Translations under genes and position numbers: made by a program
Source of the DNA: Neoconidiobolus thromboides FSU 785
Taxonomy: Eukaryota; Fungi; Entomophthoromycota
NCBI GenBank assembly: GCA_025603075.1
Contig: MU626351.1
Location: 18,034-82,033 of the forward strand
Length of the DNA stretch: 64,000 nucleotides
Reading direction: 5' to 3'
The notes under the pieces: generated by a model
The model's database searches: none
What the model was told of the DNA's origin: nothing
Seen by the model: only the letters and a program-made list of their open reading frames with translations
Part shown: positions 5,753-18,135 of the stretch, in pieces
How the letters are laid out: each line of letters begins with the position of its first letter
Numbering within the stretch: the stretch's first letter is position 1

Positions 5753-8700
5753 ATGAAAAAGGATAAATTAAAATTGAAGCAAAGTAAATTAATGAGTATA
5801 TAGAAATACCAATATTAGGTATTAATGATATTGAATTTAGCTACTTTAAATAATATATTAACGCCCATTGGGGTGAAGGTTAATAGTAAGTAGTAATATC
5901 GATGGTATTAATAATGAATAGAAATTAAAGTTAACTTACATAACATTTAGCCAACCGAGGTATAGAAATCGACAAGTTTGTTGAGGTAATATTAGTACAA
6001 TTTATTAAATGATTTGGATAGATATTGATGAATTGCTATTATTTAGACACGTAAGAATGAAATTGAACAGATGGAAAAAACGATGAAACAATATAGGTAA
6101 AGATAAAAGCAACTAACAACAATTAGTTTTTGATTTTCGATTTTTGATTTTGAGTCTATTTTTGTTAAATTAGAAAATCAGTCAATAAAAGAGCGTTTCA
6201 AACACTTCCAAGATATTTAAGAAGAAGAACAGCTAGTCATAATTGTTATAGAGTGCCGCAAAGATTAAGAGAAAAAACCAAATTTGAAGTGAGTATTTAA
6301 TATTAGTAGTAATAGTATCCAAGTTTAATGGGATTCAATTAATATACATAATTATAGATCTCTAAAGATGGCTTAAAAATAAGAAAAAGAAGCTCACGAT
6401 TTAAATATTATGCTAAAAATAGAAGGTTAGAATATCTAAAAAGGCAAAGTAAGTTGTAGTTTATTAGTGAATTGTTTTTGTTTTTTATATTTTCAATCAA
6501 TAGAAAATAAAACTTGGTTACAAACGCATATTTGGCATGCCAAAAGAATGCATATGAAAGTATTATGGGGCTATTCATTGGTAATAAGATTTAACTTAAT
6601 ATGTTATTTATATTAATATGGTATTTATTATTATTGTTATTATTACTTCTTGTTATTATAGCCCATTAAAGCTACATTGAAAAACTATCGAACTTTATAT
6701 CGATATAATAAGACTAAAGCAACGATTTATGATATAAGTTATAATTCTATAATCCAATTAAATGGCAATAAAATAGAGTTAAGTTCATTTTTAAATTTGT
6801 TTTTGGATCCATCCGAATTATCAGTAAAGAGCAAAAGGTAATATTAATATTTAGTTGTTTCTTTTTATAAGGATATTAATATTGCTTTTATTAGAATATC
6901 AACAGGAAAAAGGATGTACTCAAGCATGTTATATGAGAAATTAAGTTTCCCTTATAACTTATTATGCCCAATTAAATTGATTTTCCAATCCACCCTCAAC
7001 CAAACAGAACCCTCATCTAACAATACTAAAGTATGGATTATAATCCATGCTTCATGTTATTATAAAGTATTTAATATGTTCGAAAATGAAATTAGAGAAA
7101 GTGAATCAAACATTCAGTTATTAAATTTAAAGGATAAATTGAATTTGTTTTTATTAAATGGTAAAAATGCAGCTATGAGTTTATCCAAGGCGTTGGATCC
7201 AACAGAGAGTGATGATCCTAAATTAGGTAATTCGAAATATGGACAAGAGGTAAAAAAAACTTATTTAAATTTAGATTTTTTTCTGAGATATTAATATTAC
7301 TTTTTATTAGTTATTTTCCTTGTTACAATATCCAGGCTTAGCAACTACCATTGGTTTAAATACTATTTTTTCAGTCACTTTATTGGATCCTAGGTTGAGG
7401 TAAATTTAGTTTTATATAATAATAATAGAGTATTTAAATTAACATATGAATAACAAATAATAGAGGAACTCCAAGAAAAGAAAAGAGCATAGAAAGTTAT
7501 CAAATTACAAAAGATAAACAAGATAGAATCATTGATCTTTTATTAACTCATACCGATGATTTAGCTTATTCAAAATTATGGGATATGATGGAGAATGAAG
7601 AAGAAAATAAAAATAGCGAGAAAAGTATTAATAATAGAAAATCAAAAGTGAGTCAAGCTATTTTATCGTAACTATATATTTATAATAATATTGTATTTAG
7701 TTGTTACTTCCTAAAACAGGATTAAAACCTACACCTTGCGATAACCGTATCCCCATCATCATCGTCAAGACAAGTATCTCTTCCCACCCTACATCAGAAA
7801 AAGACAATTATTTATTAATAACTCCCTCCCAATGGGGAAGAGATTTATTTAAACAGTTTGTTTTTAATTCTACTTTAGTAATGGGTTTAAGAGATTATAA
7901 TAATTTAAATTATGAATCAAAATCATTCCGATTTCCAAATGATTATCCAATGACTAACAGTTATTTGGAGTATATCAAAGATAAAAAGCTATTAAAGATG
8001 AGTAAGTATTTAGCAACTTCAAAGGCAAAGAGAGTCAATTTTGAAAAATTAAAAGTGAAATATCCATTTGGACCCGAGTTTAAAAGTTTAACCTATTATC
8101 AACAATTAAGAGGAGAGGAAATAGAGGGAAATAGAATGGGAAATAAACGTAAATTAAAAGAAGAAGAGGGAAATAAAGAGGATATCAAAATGGAAAATGA
8201 GAGTGATAAAGTAATGGAAATTAAAAAAAACAAATTAAAGAATAAAGGTGAAGAAACAGATAGAAATATAGAAGAACCTAACACTGCTATCATCACTTCT
8301 CTAATTAATTTAAACTCTATGTTCTTATTACCAAATAAGTTAGTTAGTGAAGTTATTAAAATTAAAGATGATGAACAAAAATTAATAAATATTAATAAAA
8401 TATTAGATCAAAGTTTAAAAAGCTATGAATTTAAAAGAGAAATTCAATTGAATAATCAAGTGAATTGGGATTCAGGATTAATTCAAATCAATTTAGAATT
8501 TATTAATGGGGCGAGTGGTAAATTTAAATTTGGTATGGTTTATATGATGAATAAAAATTGGCTAGAGATAAAGAAGGATGAAACGGTGAAAGAGGTAAAT
8601 CCATTATTACTAACTTTTTTTAATTATTTGATTTAAATTTTATTCATTTATTAATGATAACTTTAGAAATCAAATTCAGCGAATGATATACCCCCTGAAT

Positions 8701-8983: not shown

Positions 8984-9379
8984 GTAAAAATAAATAAGTG
9001 TGAAAGTTTCGATTGATAACATAGAGAAATTGATTTTTAATGTTTTTTTAATAAATTGTAAAATGAAAATTGTTGATAAGCTTTCTTAAGATTAAAATAT
9101 GAATTTTAGCTTTTAATTTTATGTTATTATAAATATTTAAAAGTTAAAACTGATTGATTTTCTAATATTGTTCAATTAATTGTACTTTATATCAGCCTTA
9201 AATGCAAGGTCATTGTCTATTTAATAAAAATCAGTTATGAATTAATGGATCTTTTAGTTTAATTATTTTTATTTATCAAATATTGAAATTATAACATGGA
9301 TTTGATAAAGTGGAAAAATATGACAAAACAAGAAAATTGCCCCTACTAACAAGTTTTTAATAGTTGTTAATAATTAGTT

Positions 9380-9476
9380 GGGGATGTATTTTCGTGCTTA
9401 AGAACTTTACTAATAAATTTTTCACTTAAATAGCGCTTAAAAATGGAAAAAATAATGAAATCAAAAAAACACTCCC
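9380..9476 (+). mobile_element. ~98-bp MITE copy (Sola-like)
   Basis: GGGGATGTATTTT...AAAAAAACACTCCC with 4-bp duplication AGTT on both sides. Confidence 0.9.
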
Positions 9477-9580
9477 AGTTAATTATTATGTATCATCATA
9501 CTTTTCCACTTTACCAAATCCATTTTATCCTTTATTTTTTAAATCAAATTTAACAATACTAATGATTCAAAACATTAATT

Positions 9581-9679
9581 TGTTTTTTTGTTTAACAATT
9601 TTATTAACAATTTTATTAACAGTTTTCCACTCAAATAGCACTTAAGAAATAGAAGTGATGAAGCTGAAAAAAACACCCC
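9581..9679 (+). mobile_element. MITE copy, left end eroded, right end interrupted by solo-LTR-like insertion
   Basis: ttccactcaaatagcactt...aaaaaaacacccc runs directly into TGTGAAAT at 9680. Confidence 0.75.
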
Positions 9680-10143
9680 TGTGAAATATCACTCTGTCAG
9701 CCCCATGGTTAATTATAGCATAATAATTTCCTAAGCTGTTGTGTTCTCGATTATACAGACAATTAGTCCCATGTTCTTATTTTGATTTGCTATGAGAATT
9801 TCTATCTTCGTCCCAAAGAATATTATCCTCTCGTTTTGATATTTATACTTATCGGAGTATAAAAGAGATTCTAAAACATAATAGCTCTAGGCTTTTTAAC
9901 TGAATTATTCCCTGATATCTTATACATTTAATAAAGACACTAAGTTTTCTTAATAATATTTTATGTAGATTTTACATTAGTATTGTCTATTCTATTTGTT
10001 TTACATAGTCTGTAGCCTATTACGTGCTATTCTTCGTAATCCAAGTCTATTTTAGTCACATAAACTAAGACTTTTCGACTTATAGTGTAATCAATCAGGT
10101 AATAGCTGTTTTTGACTCCAAATACTGAGTACCAGATTTCACA
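9680..10143 (+). mobile_element. 464-bp solo-LTR-like element, copy 1
   Basis: Starts TGTGAAAT and ends ATTTCACA. TATAAAA at ~9858 and AATAAA at ~9930. Flanks ACCCC / ACTCT (5-bp duplication with two C>T changes). Reverse complement of 11387-11850. Confidence 0.75.
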
Positions 10144-10148
10144 ACTCT

Positions 10149-10750
10149 GTGTTGATACTCAAAAAAACACATTTAATGAAACTATTAAAAAATTAAATAA
10201 TAAAAGTTGTGTAATAATTTTAGATTTTAAACAAAATATGGAAATAGGAACAAGACCAGATTCAATAAATCTAGATCATTATAATAAACAAGCTATATCA
10301 GTATTAGGTTTTGGTGCTTTATACTTAAAAGATGATAAAATAATAGGCAGAGTTTATTTTGATTATTTATCTGAAATATTGAATCATGATTCAGCATATG
10401 CAGGAGATTATTTAATTGATTTAATCTCTATAGAGCTTTTATTTAAAAATTTTGTAAGAATTAATATATGGACAGGTACGGAAAATCATTTTAAATTTCA
10501 AGAGTTTCTACATTACACATTTGAAGAAATTCATAAAATAAATAGTAGTTTGAATGTCGATTTTAATTTTTTTGCTAAGCATCATGGAAAAGGTATAATT
10601 GATAGACATTTTGGAAATCTTTTACAATGAAAAAGTAGTTTTAAAACATTAAGAAAAATGGAAGATATTACTTAATTAATTTTAAAATTTGAGGTTTTTG
10701 TTTGTGAGCATAATATGATCAATAACTCAACTGTTAATAATGGAAAAACA
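10149..10750 (+). pseudogene. Fragment of DDD-type DNA transposase (Sola-like), inactivated
   Basis: CVIILDFKQN...NHDS...INIWTGTENHFK...NFFAKHHGKGIIDRHFG follows the pattern D...(S/T)D..HF...HGK..D. The middle Asp position reads Gly. In-frame TGA at 10628-10630, after which the frame continues briefly. The 5' end is cut at the LTR-like element. Confidence 0.65.
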
Positions 10751-10753
10751 GAT

Positions 10754-10850
10754 GGGGATGTATTTTTGTGTTTAAGAATTTCACTAATAATTTTTCCGCT
10801 TAAATAGTGCTTAAAAGATGAAAAAGTAATGAAGCCAAAAAAACACCCCC
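10754..10850 (+). mobile_element. MITE copy
   Basis: GGGGATGTATTTTT...AAAAAAACACCCCC; flanks not perfectly duplicated. Confidence 0.85.
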
Positions 10851-10993
10851 ATAAGTTAAATAATTGTTAAAGTTTTTATCATGTATAAGTAATAAAAAGT
10901 TAAATTTGTTGAAAATAGCTTTGATTTTCTTATCGTTAGCTTTTTTTAACTTTTTTAATCAAGCTTTTATATATTTTGTAATTAATAATATTA

Positions 10994-11082
10994 GGGAATG
11001 TGTTTTTTTGTTTAAGAATTTTACTAATATCTTTCGACTCAAATAGTGCTTAAAAAGTAGAAAATAATGAAAAAAAATTCTC
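10994..11082 (+). mobile_element. MITE copy (small internal deletion)
   Basis: Consensus core; ATTA duplicated on both sides. Confidence 0.8.
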
Positions 11083-11141
11083 ATTATTAAGTTTTTAGTT
11101 AAATTTAATAAACTAATTATAGATTTTTTTATCAAACATTA

Positions 11142-11239
11142 GGGGATGTATTTTTGTAGTCAAGAGTTTTACTAACAATTTTTCCACTCAAGTAGTGCTT
11201 AAAAGATAGAAAAAGTAATAAAGCAAAAAAAATATCCCC
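11142..11239 (+). mobile_element. MITE copy
   Basis: GGGGATGTATTTTT...AAAAAAATATCCCC; flanks ATTA/AATA. Confidence 0.88.
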
Positions 11240-11386
11240 AATATTTAATAATTTATATTAAAACTAATTAAACTGCCATTCCTACTATTTTGATATTATT
11301 TAAAAGTAAAAATATCATTATCAAGGATACAAATAAAAATATATATATATTTTTAAATAAGTTTCAATATCTGGTTTCAATATGGG

Positions 11387-11850
11387 TGTGAAATCTGGTA
11401 CTCAGGGTTTGGAGTCAAGAACAGCTATTGCTGGGTTGACTACACTATAAGTCGAAAGGTCTTAGTTTATGTGACTAAGATAGACTTGGATTATGAGGAA
11501 TAGCACGTAATAGGTTACAAGCTATATAAGACAAATAGAATAGACAATACTAATGTAAAATCTATGTAAAATACTATTAAGAAAACTTAGTGGCTTTATT
11601 AAATGTTCGAGATATCAGGGAATAATTCAGTTAAAAAGCCTCGAACTATTATACTCTGTAAACTCTTTTATACTCTGAAAAATATAAATATCAAAATGAG
11701 AAGATAGTATTCTTTTGGATGGAGCTAGAAATTCTCATAACAAATCAAAATAAGAACATGGGATTGATTTCCTCTGAGCTCGAGAACACAACAGCTTAGG
11801 CGATTGTTATGTTATAATTAACCATGGGACTGACATAGCGATATTTCACA
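11387..11850 (-). mobile_element. 464-bp solo-LTR-like element, copy 2 (inverted relative to copy 1)
   Basis: TGTGAAAT...ATTTCACA termini. Perfect 5-bp duplication ATGGG at 11382-11386 and 11851-11855. Same length as copy 1 and alignable along its whole length. Confidence 0.8.
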
Positions 11851-11852
11851 AT

Positions 11853-11950
11853 GGGGATGTATTTTTTTGTTTAAGAATTTTACTAACAATCTTTCTGCTC
11901 AAATAGCGCTTAAAAAGTGGAAAAGTAATGAAATCAAAAAAAACATCCCC
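11853..11950 (+). mobile_element. MITE copy whose left terminus was the LTR target site
   Basis: GGGGATGTATTTTTTT...AAAAAAAACATCCCC. Removing the LTR restores ATAT|GGGG...CCCC|ATAT. Confidence 0.9.
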
Positions 11951-12036
11951 ATATATTAATAGCTTAATTTTACTATCATTGTTTATATCACGTTTAAAGA
12001 CAACTAGCTATTAATAATGTTTAAATATTAAATATA

Positions 12037-12131
12037 GAAGTATTTTTTTTGATTCTGTCTTTTTTTTCTTTTAACCGTTATTTAAGTAGAAAAACTATTA
12101 GTAAAATCTTTGAATAAAAAAACTGTATCCT
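12037..12131 (-). mobile_element. Degenerate MITE copy
   Basis: ttttaaccgttatttaagtagaaaaactattagtaaaatc matches the reverse consensus with many substitutions. Confidence 0.55.
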
Positions 12132-12742
12132 TATATTTATAAAATAAAAAGTAGTTAAAGAAATCATTTAAAACTGTTAAAAGTTTAAAATAACTTTAAA
12201 ACTTCTTTGTTTAAGCTAATAAGACTATTATTTCAAAAATTAACATTAGAAAAATTTGAAATTTTAACATATAAAATGTCTTTAAAAGTTATTTTAAAAA
12301 TTGAAGTACTTTAGACAGCTGTTTTTAATAACTAGGAATTGAAAAGTGTTTATTTTTAAGGCAATTTTTAACACTGTATACCCTTCCTATATATTTTTAA
12401 CTTTGTATTAAATAACTTGATTTTAAATTAGAAACAATAAAAAGTATCTAGTTACAAACTGCTCTATCATGTAATATTATCATGTTAAAAGTTATTTTAC
12501 ATTATCAGTCCTAAAAATATAAACTAAAATAAATTAAATTTGTTATCAAAGAAATGCTTTTAGGCCATTTTATGCACTCTGTGTTGAATTTTGTGGTTGT
12601 TGATCTTTTTTTATTTGGGTTAACGGCTAGGTGTGAAGAAAATATTAAAGTTTCAATTGAAGTTGCACATCGCTTCTATTTATTTATCTATTTAAAAGAT
12701 TTCTCTTCATTTAAAAATGTGGAGTCCATGCTTTTAAAAATA

Positions 12743-12840
12743 GGGAGTGCTTTTTTTGGTTTCATCACTTTTTCCATCTTTTAAGCGCTATTCAAATGGA
12801 AAAATTGTTAATAAAACCCTTGAACAAAAAATACATTCCC
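12743..12840 (-). mobile_element. MITE copy
   Basis: GGGAGTGCTTTTTTTGG...AAAAAATACATTCCC, reverse orientation. Confidence 0.85.
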
Positions 12841-17464: not shown

Positions 17465-18135
17465 ATATAGTTTTCAAAATGCCAAAGCTATCATTACTAT
17501 CATATATTGTTGAACAAAATAAGAACGAGTAATGTCTAGTTAAATATATCTATAGCAATACTAATATTCTATAGTTGTATCGCCATAAATGCAAAGATAT
17601 AGTTATGCTATAGAGTGCATTCAAAAATTATTCAAAAGCTACTAGCGATTACTTTAAGTATTGATTTCTCGATTAACAACTAAAAGACAATGGCTTTTTA
17701 TATACATACTCGATCTAGATATAATAATATAGCATAAATCATTGCTTTTAAGATTTTATATTAAGTAAGGTGTTTTGGTTTATTTGAATATCAGGAAATG
17801 TGATAATTATTGAATTATTTCAAAAAAATTACTTTGTTATTTGTAATAACTTTAATAAGTTCAAATATACTACTTAAAATAAAGTCTAAAAGTAGTATTA
17901 TATACACCAATGTATACATCAATCAAAAAGATTCAATTTTTAATTACAGACGACTAAGGAACTAACATTTGAAGTGGGATACTTGTGATTTTGGGACAGT
18001 TTTAAATAATTGATATGAATACAAATAGCGCTTATTATTTTATAGTTACACTGGCAGAGCTATATTATATAAACAATGGCTATAAAGTTTTCTTATACAC
18101 GTATCAACATTGACACATGTTACAAAATAATATTA

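Follow-up and report, generated by a model that had tools for sequence, protein, structure and literature searches.

Termini of miniature inverted-repeat transposable elements as an insertion hot spot for the solo long terminal repeats of an apparently extinct Ty3/gypsy family in Neoconidiobolus thromboides

Introduction

Why should two copies of the same 464-bp unit each stand directly against the end of a MITE (miniature inverted-repeat transposable element)? The question is raised by a 64,000-nucleotide stretch of the genome of the fungus Neoconidiobolus thromboides FSU 785 (GenBank assembly GCA_025603075.1, contig MU626351.1, forward-strand positions 18,034 to 82,033), which is called the window below and whose own numbering is used. 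The source assembly is AT-rich, with 24.6 Mb in 799 contigs and about 25% G+C, and the genes of the window are of a fungal or opisthokont kind. Copy 1 of the unit (9680-10143, + strand) follows the right terminus, ...AAAAAAACACCCC, of a MITE copy at 9583-9679 (+ strand) whose left end is degenerate, and copy 2 (11387-11850, - strand) precedes the left terminus of a MITE copy at 11853-11950 (+ strand). A reading made from the sequence alone had taken both units for solo long terminal repeats (LTRs) of a retroelement that homes on Sola-type termini, and had named a simple preference for rare G/C runs as an alternative. Herein, we report that the MITE terminus is a real, sharp and statistically strong hot spot for a minority of the insertions of this LTR family, and that strict homing on MITE ends fails.

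Results

LTR junctions at MITE ends far exceed chance

The enrichment of insertions at MITE termini was assessed across the genome with the pattern 'ACAYCCC, 0-4 nt, TGTGAAAT', in which TGTGAAAT is the start of the unit. The pattern was found 18 times, and its reversed control was not found at all. Random placement would yield 0.3-0.6 such junctions, and 0.9-1.8 when the space open to insertion is taken as only 35% of the genome; over this whole range of 0.3-1.8, the observed number is 10 to 60 times that expected by chance, with P <1e-12 in every case. The exact pattern misses diverged junctions, such as those of loci L008, L012 and L049. Left and right MITE ends were used in proportion to their abundance, and insertions were also found at the ends of a larger repeat, X, the probable parent transposon of the MITE (L036, L048 and L049). 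In 13 of the 18 junctions, it was the U3 end of the LTR that pointed towards the MITE (P = 0.10 when taken alone).

The share of insertions that use this site was estimated from two lists of 100 LTR flanks of 17 nt each, which were counted by eye, so that the tallies are approximate to within 1-2. Among the 5' flanks, which were unselected, 5-6 ended in a MITE terminus and 6-7 lay inside a MITE. Among the 3' flanks, a MITE started within 4 nt in 2 and within 8 nt in 2 more. The LTR copies at MITE ends amount to about 5-8%, and more than 90% of the copies lie elsewhere. Homing on Sola-type termini, as the sequence-only reading had it, does not agree with so small a share (5-6 of 100 5' flanks and 2 of 100 3' flanks), and strict homing is out because most copies lie away from MITE ends.

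It could be argued that no insertion bias is needed at all, and that LTRs and MITEs simply pile up in the same gene-poor islands, where harmless insertions survive. Within the window, 8 MITEs do crowd into a repeat island of 3.5 kb, and the 6-7% of sampled LTRs found inside MITEs is about 5 times the share of the genome that MITEs occupy. However, survival cannot give single-position precision, and the MITE ends carried about 13 times more LTR insertions per position than the MITE interior (P ~1e-4). Survival without any insertion bias is therefore considered a quite improbable explanation.

A second possibility is that the junctions all descend from a single LTR-MITE junction, multiplied by segmental duplication or as part of a composite element that transposed. 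Some identical flank pairs between contigs were indeed seen (C69:17332 and 19160; C197 and C231), and these suggest assembly or segmental duplicates. In contrast, the 18 junctions differ in the MITE copy concerned, show three offsets (0, 1 or 2 nt), involve either end of the LTR and have outer flanks that are not related to one another; beyond the MITE arrays, no pair of outer flanks exceeded 88% identity. Because they differ in all these respects, the junctions represent independent insertions. Copying of one junction is refuted for most of them, and its probability as the general explanation is close to negligible. The proposal of independent insertions at MITE ends thus stands for the 18 junctions with their different flanks; copy 1 of the window is not a clean insertion (see below). 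The order of events could also be read from the junctions: the duplication flanking the LTR was CCAT, CCCAT or (T)CCCC, and by it bases of the MITE are also found beyond the opposite end of the LTR, indicating that the LTR entered a pre-existing MITE end.

The 464-bp unit as the solo LTR of a Ty3/gypsy family

The two window units shared 87.3% identity over all 464 bases by BLAST, within the 80-90% that had been judged by eye, and each starts with TGTGAAAT and ends with ATTTCACA. These TG...CA termini, with an 8-bp inverted repeat, were shared by the two window copies and by almost every one of 35 copies sampled. In the genome, the first 24 bases of the unit had 402 matches at ≤3 mismatches versus 0 for the reversed control, its 3' end had 371 matches, and BLAST gave 667 candidates; the number of solo copies is about 400 or more. 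The copies are old, being about 88-90% alike. Among copies with a perfect target duplication, the duplication was 4 bp long in 27 and 5 bp long in 9. Two duplication lengths in one LTR family are unusual for a single integrase, and two mobilising lineages may have contributed to the family. In one case (L006/L007, C69:17349-19640), the LTR and 1.36 kb were tandemly duplicated together, and the 30-bp flanks were identical on both LTR copies.

The nature and polarity of the unit were assessed from two further loci. In contig C54, a polypurine tract, AGGGAGGGAAA, and 850 bp of retroelement-internal DNA run directly into the U3 end of an LTR of the family, and these 850 bp showed 81-85% identity to the 3' interior of a retroelement in contig C168. 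The LTRs of the C168 element were 73-79% similar to the window unit, and a sequence resembling a primer-binding site and starting with TGG lies 2 nt past its 5' LTR. Given that the polypurine tract and interior precede the TGTGAAATATC end in C54, and that the primer-binding-site-like sequence follows the other end in C168, the TGTGAAATATC end is assigned to U3. It is this end that faces the MITE in both window copies, as had been proposed.

The frame of the C168 element (L056:4341-8801) comprises 1486 aa with gag (a weak match), reverse transcriptase (RT; RVT_1, 992-1151), RNase H (RT_RNaseH, 1239-1343) and the integrase zinc domain (Integrase_H2C2, 1426-1481), which is the Ty3/gypsy order, and it ends directly after the zinc domain. 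A dUTPase-like stretch (PF00692, 23.5 bits) occupies the place expected for the protease, and this gag-pol frame is the only one left in the genome. Judged by the polypurine tract and interior in C54 and by the gag-pol frame between related LTRs in C168, the units are solo LTRs of a Ty3/gypsy family, which bears out the original assignment to solo LTRs.

No match to the integrase catalytic core (rve, PF00665) was found in the whole genome, and the interior of the C168 element is essentially single-copy. Since the core is missing genome-wide and the interior is hardly repeated, the family appears to be extinct and to survive almost wholly as solo LTRs. An intact autonomous element was looked for genome-wide and none was found; there were only two RT matches, and the RT fragment in C40 is without this LTR on its flanks. 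The search for full-length elements carrying this LTR, which the sequence-only reading had recommended, thus led to one related element with a broken gag-pol but to no intact one. A 141-aa tail open reading frame (ORF) of the C168 element gave a weak match to SH3_Tf2-1 (18 bits), and no chromodomain, the hallmark of chromoviruses, was found in this decayed integrase tail. Direct LTR pairs in C65, C369 and C110 were candidate full-length elements. The pair in C65 was rejected, as its LTRs are solo copies unrelated to each other, and the ORFs between them are host-like and lie on the opposite strand.

The absence of PF00665 from the genome, the solitary position of nearly every copy and the mixed duplication length of 4 and 5 bp would also be compatible with a non-autonomous DNA transposon with 8-bp inverted ends. 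The polypurine tract and retroelement interior that adjoin the unit in C54, and the gag-pol frame between related LTRs in C168, argue against such an origin, and we regard it as highly improbable.

The target MITE and its probable parent transposon

The MITE is about 98 bp long and forms a near-perfect hairpin with GGGGATGT...ACATCCCC ends. Its end motif, AAAWACAYCCCC, had 3939 matches in the genome versus 4 for the control. The number of MITE ends in the genome is put at about 7000-8000, as scaled from the window, in which 12 of some 21-22 ends match strictly. A perfect 4-bp duplication was found in 15 of 29 complete MITE copies (ATAT in 9, AAAT in 3, ATTT in 1 and others in 2). These duplications fit the AWWT type of Sola2 elements, for which 4-bp AT-rich AWWT duplications have been described (PMC3627910). 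The MITE was also considered as an RNA polymerase III (Pol III) gene; this was rejected, since neither a tRNA nor a meaningful Rfam match was found at 9000-12600.

The repeat X is longer than 2 kb and occurs in at least 50 copies. Its transposase frame is decayed, and its right end, ...ACAACCCC with ATAT behind it, is MITE-like; by these features X is probably the parent transposon of the MITE. Its longest open stretch (L066:1059-2189, 377 aa) had no Pfam match. In the protein Atlas, the neighbours of this 377-aa protein are DUF7869 proteins of eukaryotes, and a DDE_Tnp_ISAZ013 domain is present in some of them; a Sola2 affinity of the X protein was not confirmed by either the Pfam or the Atlas comparison.

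The MITEs and the LTRs moved during one and the same period. In L049 (8220-8782 with 8420-8519, in C65), an LTR lies inside a MITE with the duplication GCTA, and a second MITE lies inside that LTR, so that this single nest contains both orders of insertion.

Copy 2 and copy 1 have different histories

Copy 2 has its U3 end at 11850, towards the MITE, and is flanked by the perfect 5-bp duplication ATGGG that had been noticed at the outset. One ATGGG lies on the side away from the MITE (11382-11386); the other (11851-11855) combines the AT of the MITE's own ATAT-type duplication with the GGG that opens the MITE at 11853-11950, and it was into this left terminus that copy 2 integrated. Copy 2 represents a clean insertion at the MITE boundary.

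Copy 1 has its U3 end at 9680, TATAAAAG at 9858-9865 and AATAAA at 9930-9935. It does stand at the right terminus of the MITE ending at 9679, as described earlier, and its flanks, ACCCC and ACTCT, form no target duplication. Its left flank is a MITE end and its right flank is the interior of X, beginning with an ATTC site (10144-10147) that is itself a recurrent target, since L004 occupies it in the orientation opposite to that of copy 1; the insertion of L029 in X lies 13 bp from the same site. The X fragment (10144-10753, + strand) retains part of the decayed transposase frame, and the upstream half of X is absent. Given the MITE end on the left, the ATTC site of L004 on the right and the lack of a duplication, copy 1 is most readily read as a recombinant rather than a clean insertion. 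The simplest history would be that an LTR at the MITE end recombined with an LTR in X and that the intervening DNA was lost. Such an event is plausible because LTR-LTR recombination is documented elsewhere in the genome by L030 (C69:1632-2981). There, an inverted LTR pair has crossed flanks (CTTC..GTTT and GTTT..CTTC), which has the appearance of an inversion by recombination between the two LTRs.

Both units lie in a repeat island (9380-12840) that comprises eight MITE copies in 3.5 kb, the two LTR units and the 611-bp X fragment. Apart from the two MITEs next to the LTRs, the copies are found at 9380-9469 (+ strand; ~98-bp Sola2-type family with GGGG...CCCC ends, identified from the sequence and by BLAST with the 11853-11950 copy), at 10754-10850 (+ strand, inserted in X) and, by BLAST, at 10994-11077 (+ strand, partial), 11142-11239 (+ strand), 12043-12122 (- strand, diverged) and 12743-12840 (- strand). 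Abutting MITEs are frequent and have one ATAT in common, giving CCCC-ATAT-GGGG palindromes; the duplication made by a MITE probably offers a new target to later copies.

A preference for C-runs as the favoured cause of the hot spot

The right flanks of 100 LTR copies were compared in their first bases. A CC start was found in 12 versus 1.6 expected, and a C start in 28 versus 12.5 expected, and this excess is larger than the MITE-related cases. The enrichment of the duplications in C and CC starts points to an intrinsic liking of the integrase for C-runs. A second recurrent target was found at five contig ends, where (CCCTAA)n telomere repeats run directly into the LTR (C40:137830-137849, C51:81-103, C124:83-105, C213:32531-32547 and C221:31434-31453). 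U3 pointed towards the repeat in all four orientable cases, and at least two had different inner flanks. These junctions reflect either insertion into telomere repeats or healing of chromosome ends through LTR recombination, and they fit a preference for C-runs. Of the 19 junctions with the pattern 'CCCC + 0-2 nt + LTR end', 16 are MITE or X ends; when measured against the motif A-W-CCCC outside long ORFs, this MITE share is not clearly excessive (P = 0.056). The CC bias and the telomere junctions make a sequence preference for rare G/C runs, which the sequence-only reading had offered as its alternative, the better-supported cause.

With about even confidence, we attribute the hot spot to an intrinsic preference of the integrase for a short C-run motif, the effect of which was made sharper because insertions in harmless DNA survived. 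The integrase of the extinct element would have made 4-bp, less often 5-bp, staggered cuts. Its strong hot spot would have been the boundary between the terminal C-run of a MITE (or of X) and the MITE's ATAT duplication, and the U3 end would have tended towards the C-run. In a genome with 25% G+C, C-run motifs outside genes would lie mainly at MITE ends and in telomere repeats. Insertions at both places would be harmless and would persist, and the MITE ends may thus have become a safe haven in effect, although the MITE as such was not specifically recognised.

Several points weigh against this account. Outside ORFs of at least 80 aa, non-MITE C4 runs and MITE ends stand at about 38:22 in the window, and with 16 of 19 junctions at MITE or X ends (P = 3e-5) plain C4 runs are insufficient, so that more context than the C-run matters; the numbers of available sites are those of the 64-kb window alone. 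Among the sampled flanks, the other ~90% of insertion sites had no shared site or consensus. The orientation bias of 13:5 is not significant alone. Furthermore, the mechanism is read from fossil copies only, in which insertion choice and later selection are confounded.

Second in rank comes tethered integration, in which the intasome would be recruited by a protein on the terminal inverted repeat of the MITE, either the Sola2 transposase or a host factor. Analogues are Ty3 with TFIIIB and Tf1 with Sap1, and such recruitment would amount to real targeting of one parasite by another. The insertions are placed, to within 2 bp, at the very boundary on which a transposase would act, the per-site preference for MITE ends over the other C4 runs outside ORFs is about 9-fold or higher, and the 13:5 bias in orientation and the use of the ends of the parent X (L036, L048, L049) are in line with a bound protein. 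The timing would also allow it, as both kinds of element were mobile together (L049), and there is a weak likeness between the C-terminus of the remnant integrase and the Tf2-1 SH3 domain. On the other side, MITE ends account for only 5-8% of copies, the DNA sequence itself is suggested by the junctions with telomere repeats and by the CC bias seen among the duplications in general, and no targeting domain can be read, the integrase being broken and a chromodomain not found. We give tethering a small but appreciable chance. The version in which the integration complex was physically drawn to Sola2/MITE ends by the Sola2 transposase, or by a host factor with affinity for telomere repeats as well, is judged unlikely.

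The integrase might instead have favoured palindromic MITEs and telomere repeats because they stall replication forks or distort the DNA. Tf1 integration has been linked to replication-fork barriers. The near-perfect hairpin of the MITE and the insertion of several hot-spot copies between two abutting MITEs (L014, L049 and C62) are consistent with guidance by structure or replication, which would moreover provide a single cause for MITE ends and telomere repeats. However, many hot-spot insertions are at single MITEs, and the MITE interior is used far less than the ends; such guidance is an improbable cause. Integrase-independent insertion through primer homology (PMC11042837) was rejected, since the junctions have duplications and the C-run is on the wrong strand for a polypurine tract.

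Discussion

The family described here resembles target-specific LTR retrotransposons (Ty3-, Ty5- and Tf1-like) in its position-precise insertion above chance, with 18 junctions 0-4 nt from the C-run of a MITE; unlike theirs, most of its insertions are away from the target feature. Ty3 of Saccharomyces cerevisiae, with its sigma solo LTRs, is likewise of the Ty3/gypsy type and has LTRs of a few hundred bp, 8-bp inverted ends and short duplications (PMC6719617). Both elements insert with positional precision beside a defined genomic feature in a compact genome. In contrast, Ty3 inserts almost exclusively at Pol III start sites via TFIIIB, whereas only 5-8% of the copies here are at the feature, which is a transposon end and not a gene, with no Pol III gene or Rfam RNA there. 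Tf1 of Schizosaccharomyces pombe is also of the Ty3/gypsy type and has single-nucleotide hot spots next to a DNA motif that is bound by protein, together with a bias in orientation. Here, the tail of the integrase remnant gave a weak match to the Tf2-1 SH3 domain; Tf1 is guided by Sap1, whereas the integrase here is broken.

The Drosophila elements gypsy, 17.6 and 297 share the Ty3/gypsy type, the 4-bp duplications and a target choice by short sequence; theirs are AT-rich, TATA-like sites at nearly all insertions, whereas here a C-run is used by a minority. A retroelement landing in another mobile element is known from Tx1L of Xenopus laevis, which inserts into the DNA transposon Tx1D (Christensen et al. 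2000, cited in PMC6719617). Tx1L differs in being of the non-LTR kind, with an endonuclease that is sequence-specific and a near-exclusive target; the present case has an LTR element, an integrase and a partial preference.

Known targets of LTR retroelement integration are Pol III genes, promoters and heterochromatin. In the literature, we found no description of LTR insertion at MITE or terminal-inverted-repeat ends, and no work on the transposons of Neoconidiobolus thromboides; the use of Sola2 MITE termini as a hot spot by a Ty3/gypsy element apparently has no earlier description. For annotators, the MITE-LTR junctions of this genome are to be taken as biological and not as assembly artefacts.

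Biased or targeted integration is a survival route of LTR retroelements in compact genomes, and the fossil record of about 400 insertions examined here places one hot spot exactly where a DNA transposon or MITE meets its flank and another at telomere repeats. If a bound protein was involved, it would be a new class of tether, and the LTR retroelement would have borrowed the recognition machinery of another parasite to find safe sites; we know of no LTR element for which this is described. If only a C-run preference was at work, the family would be a tidy example of how base composition can make another transposon a safe haven.

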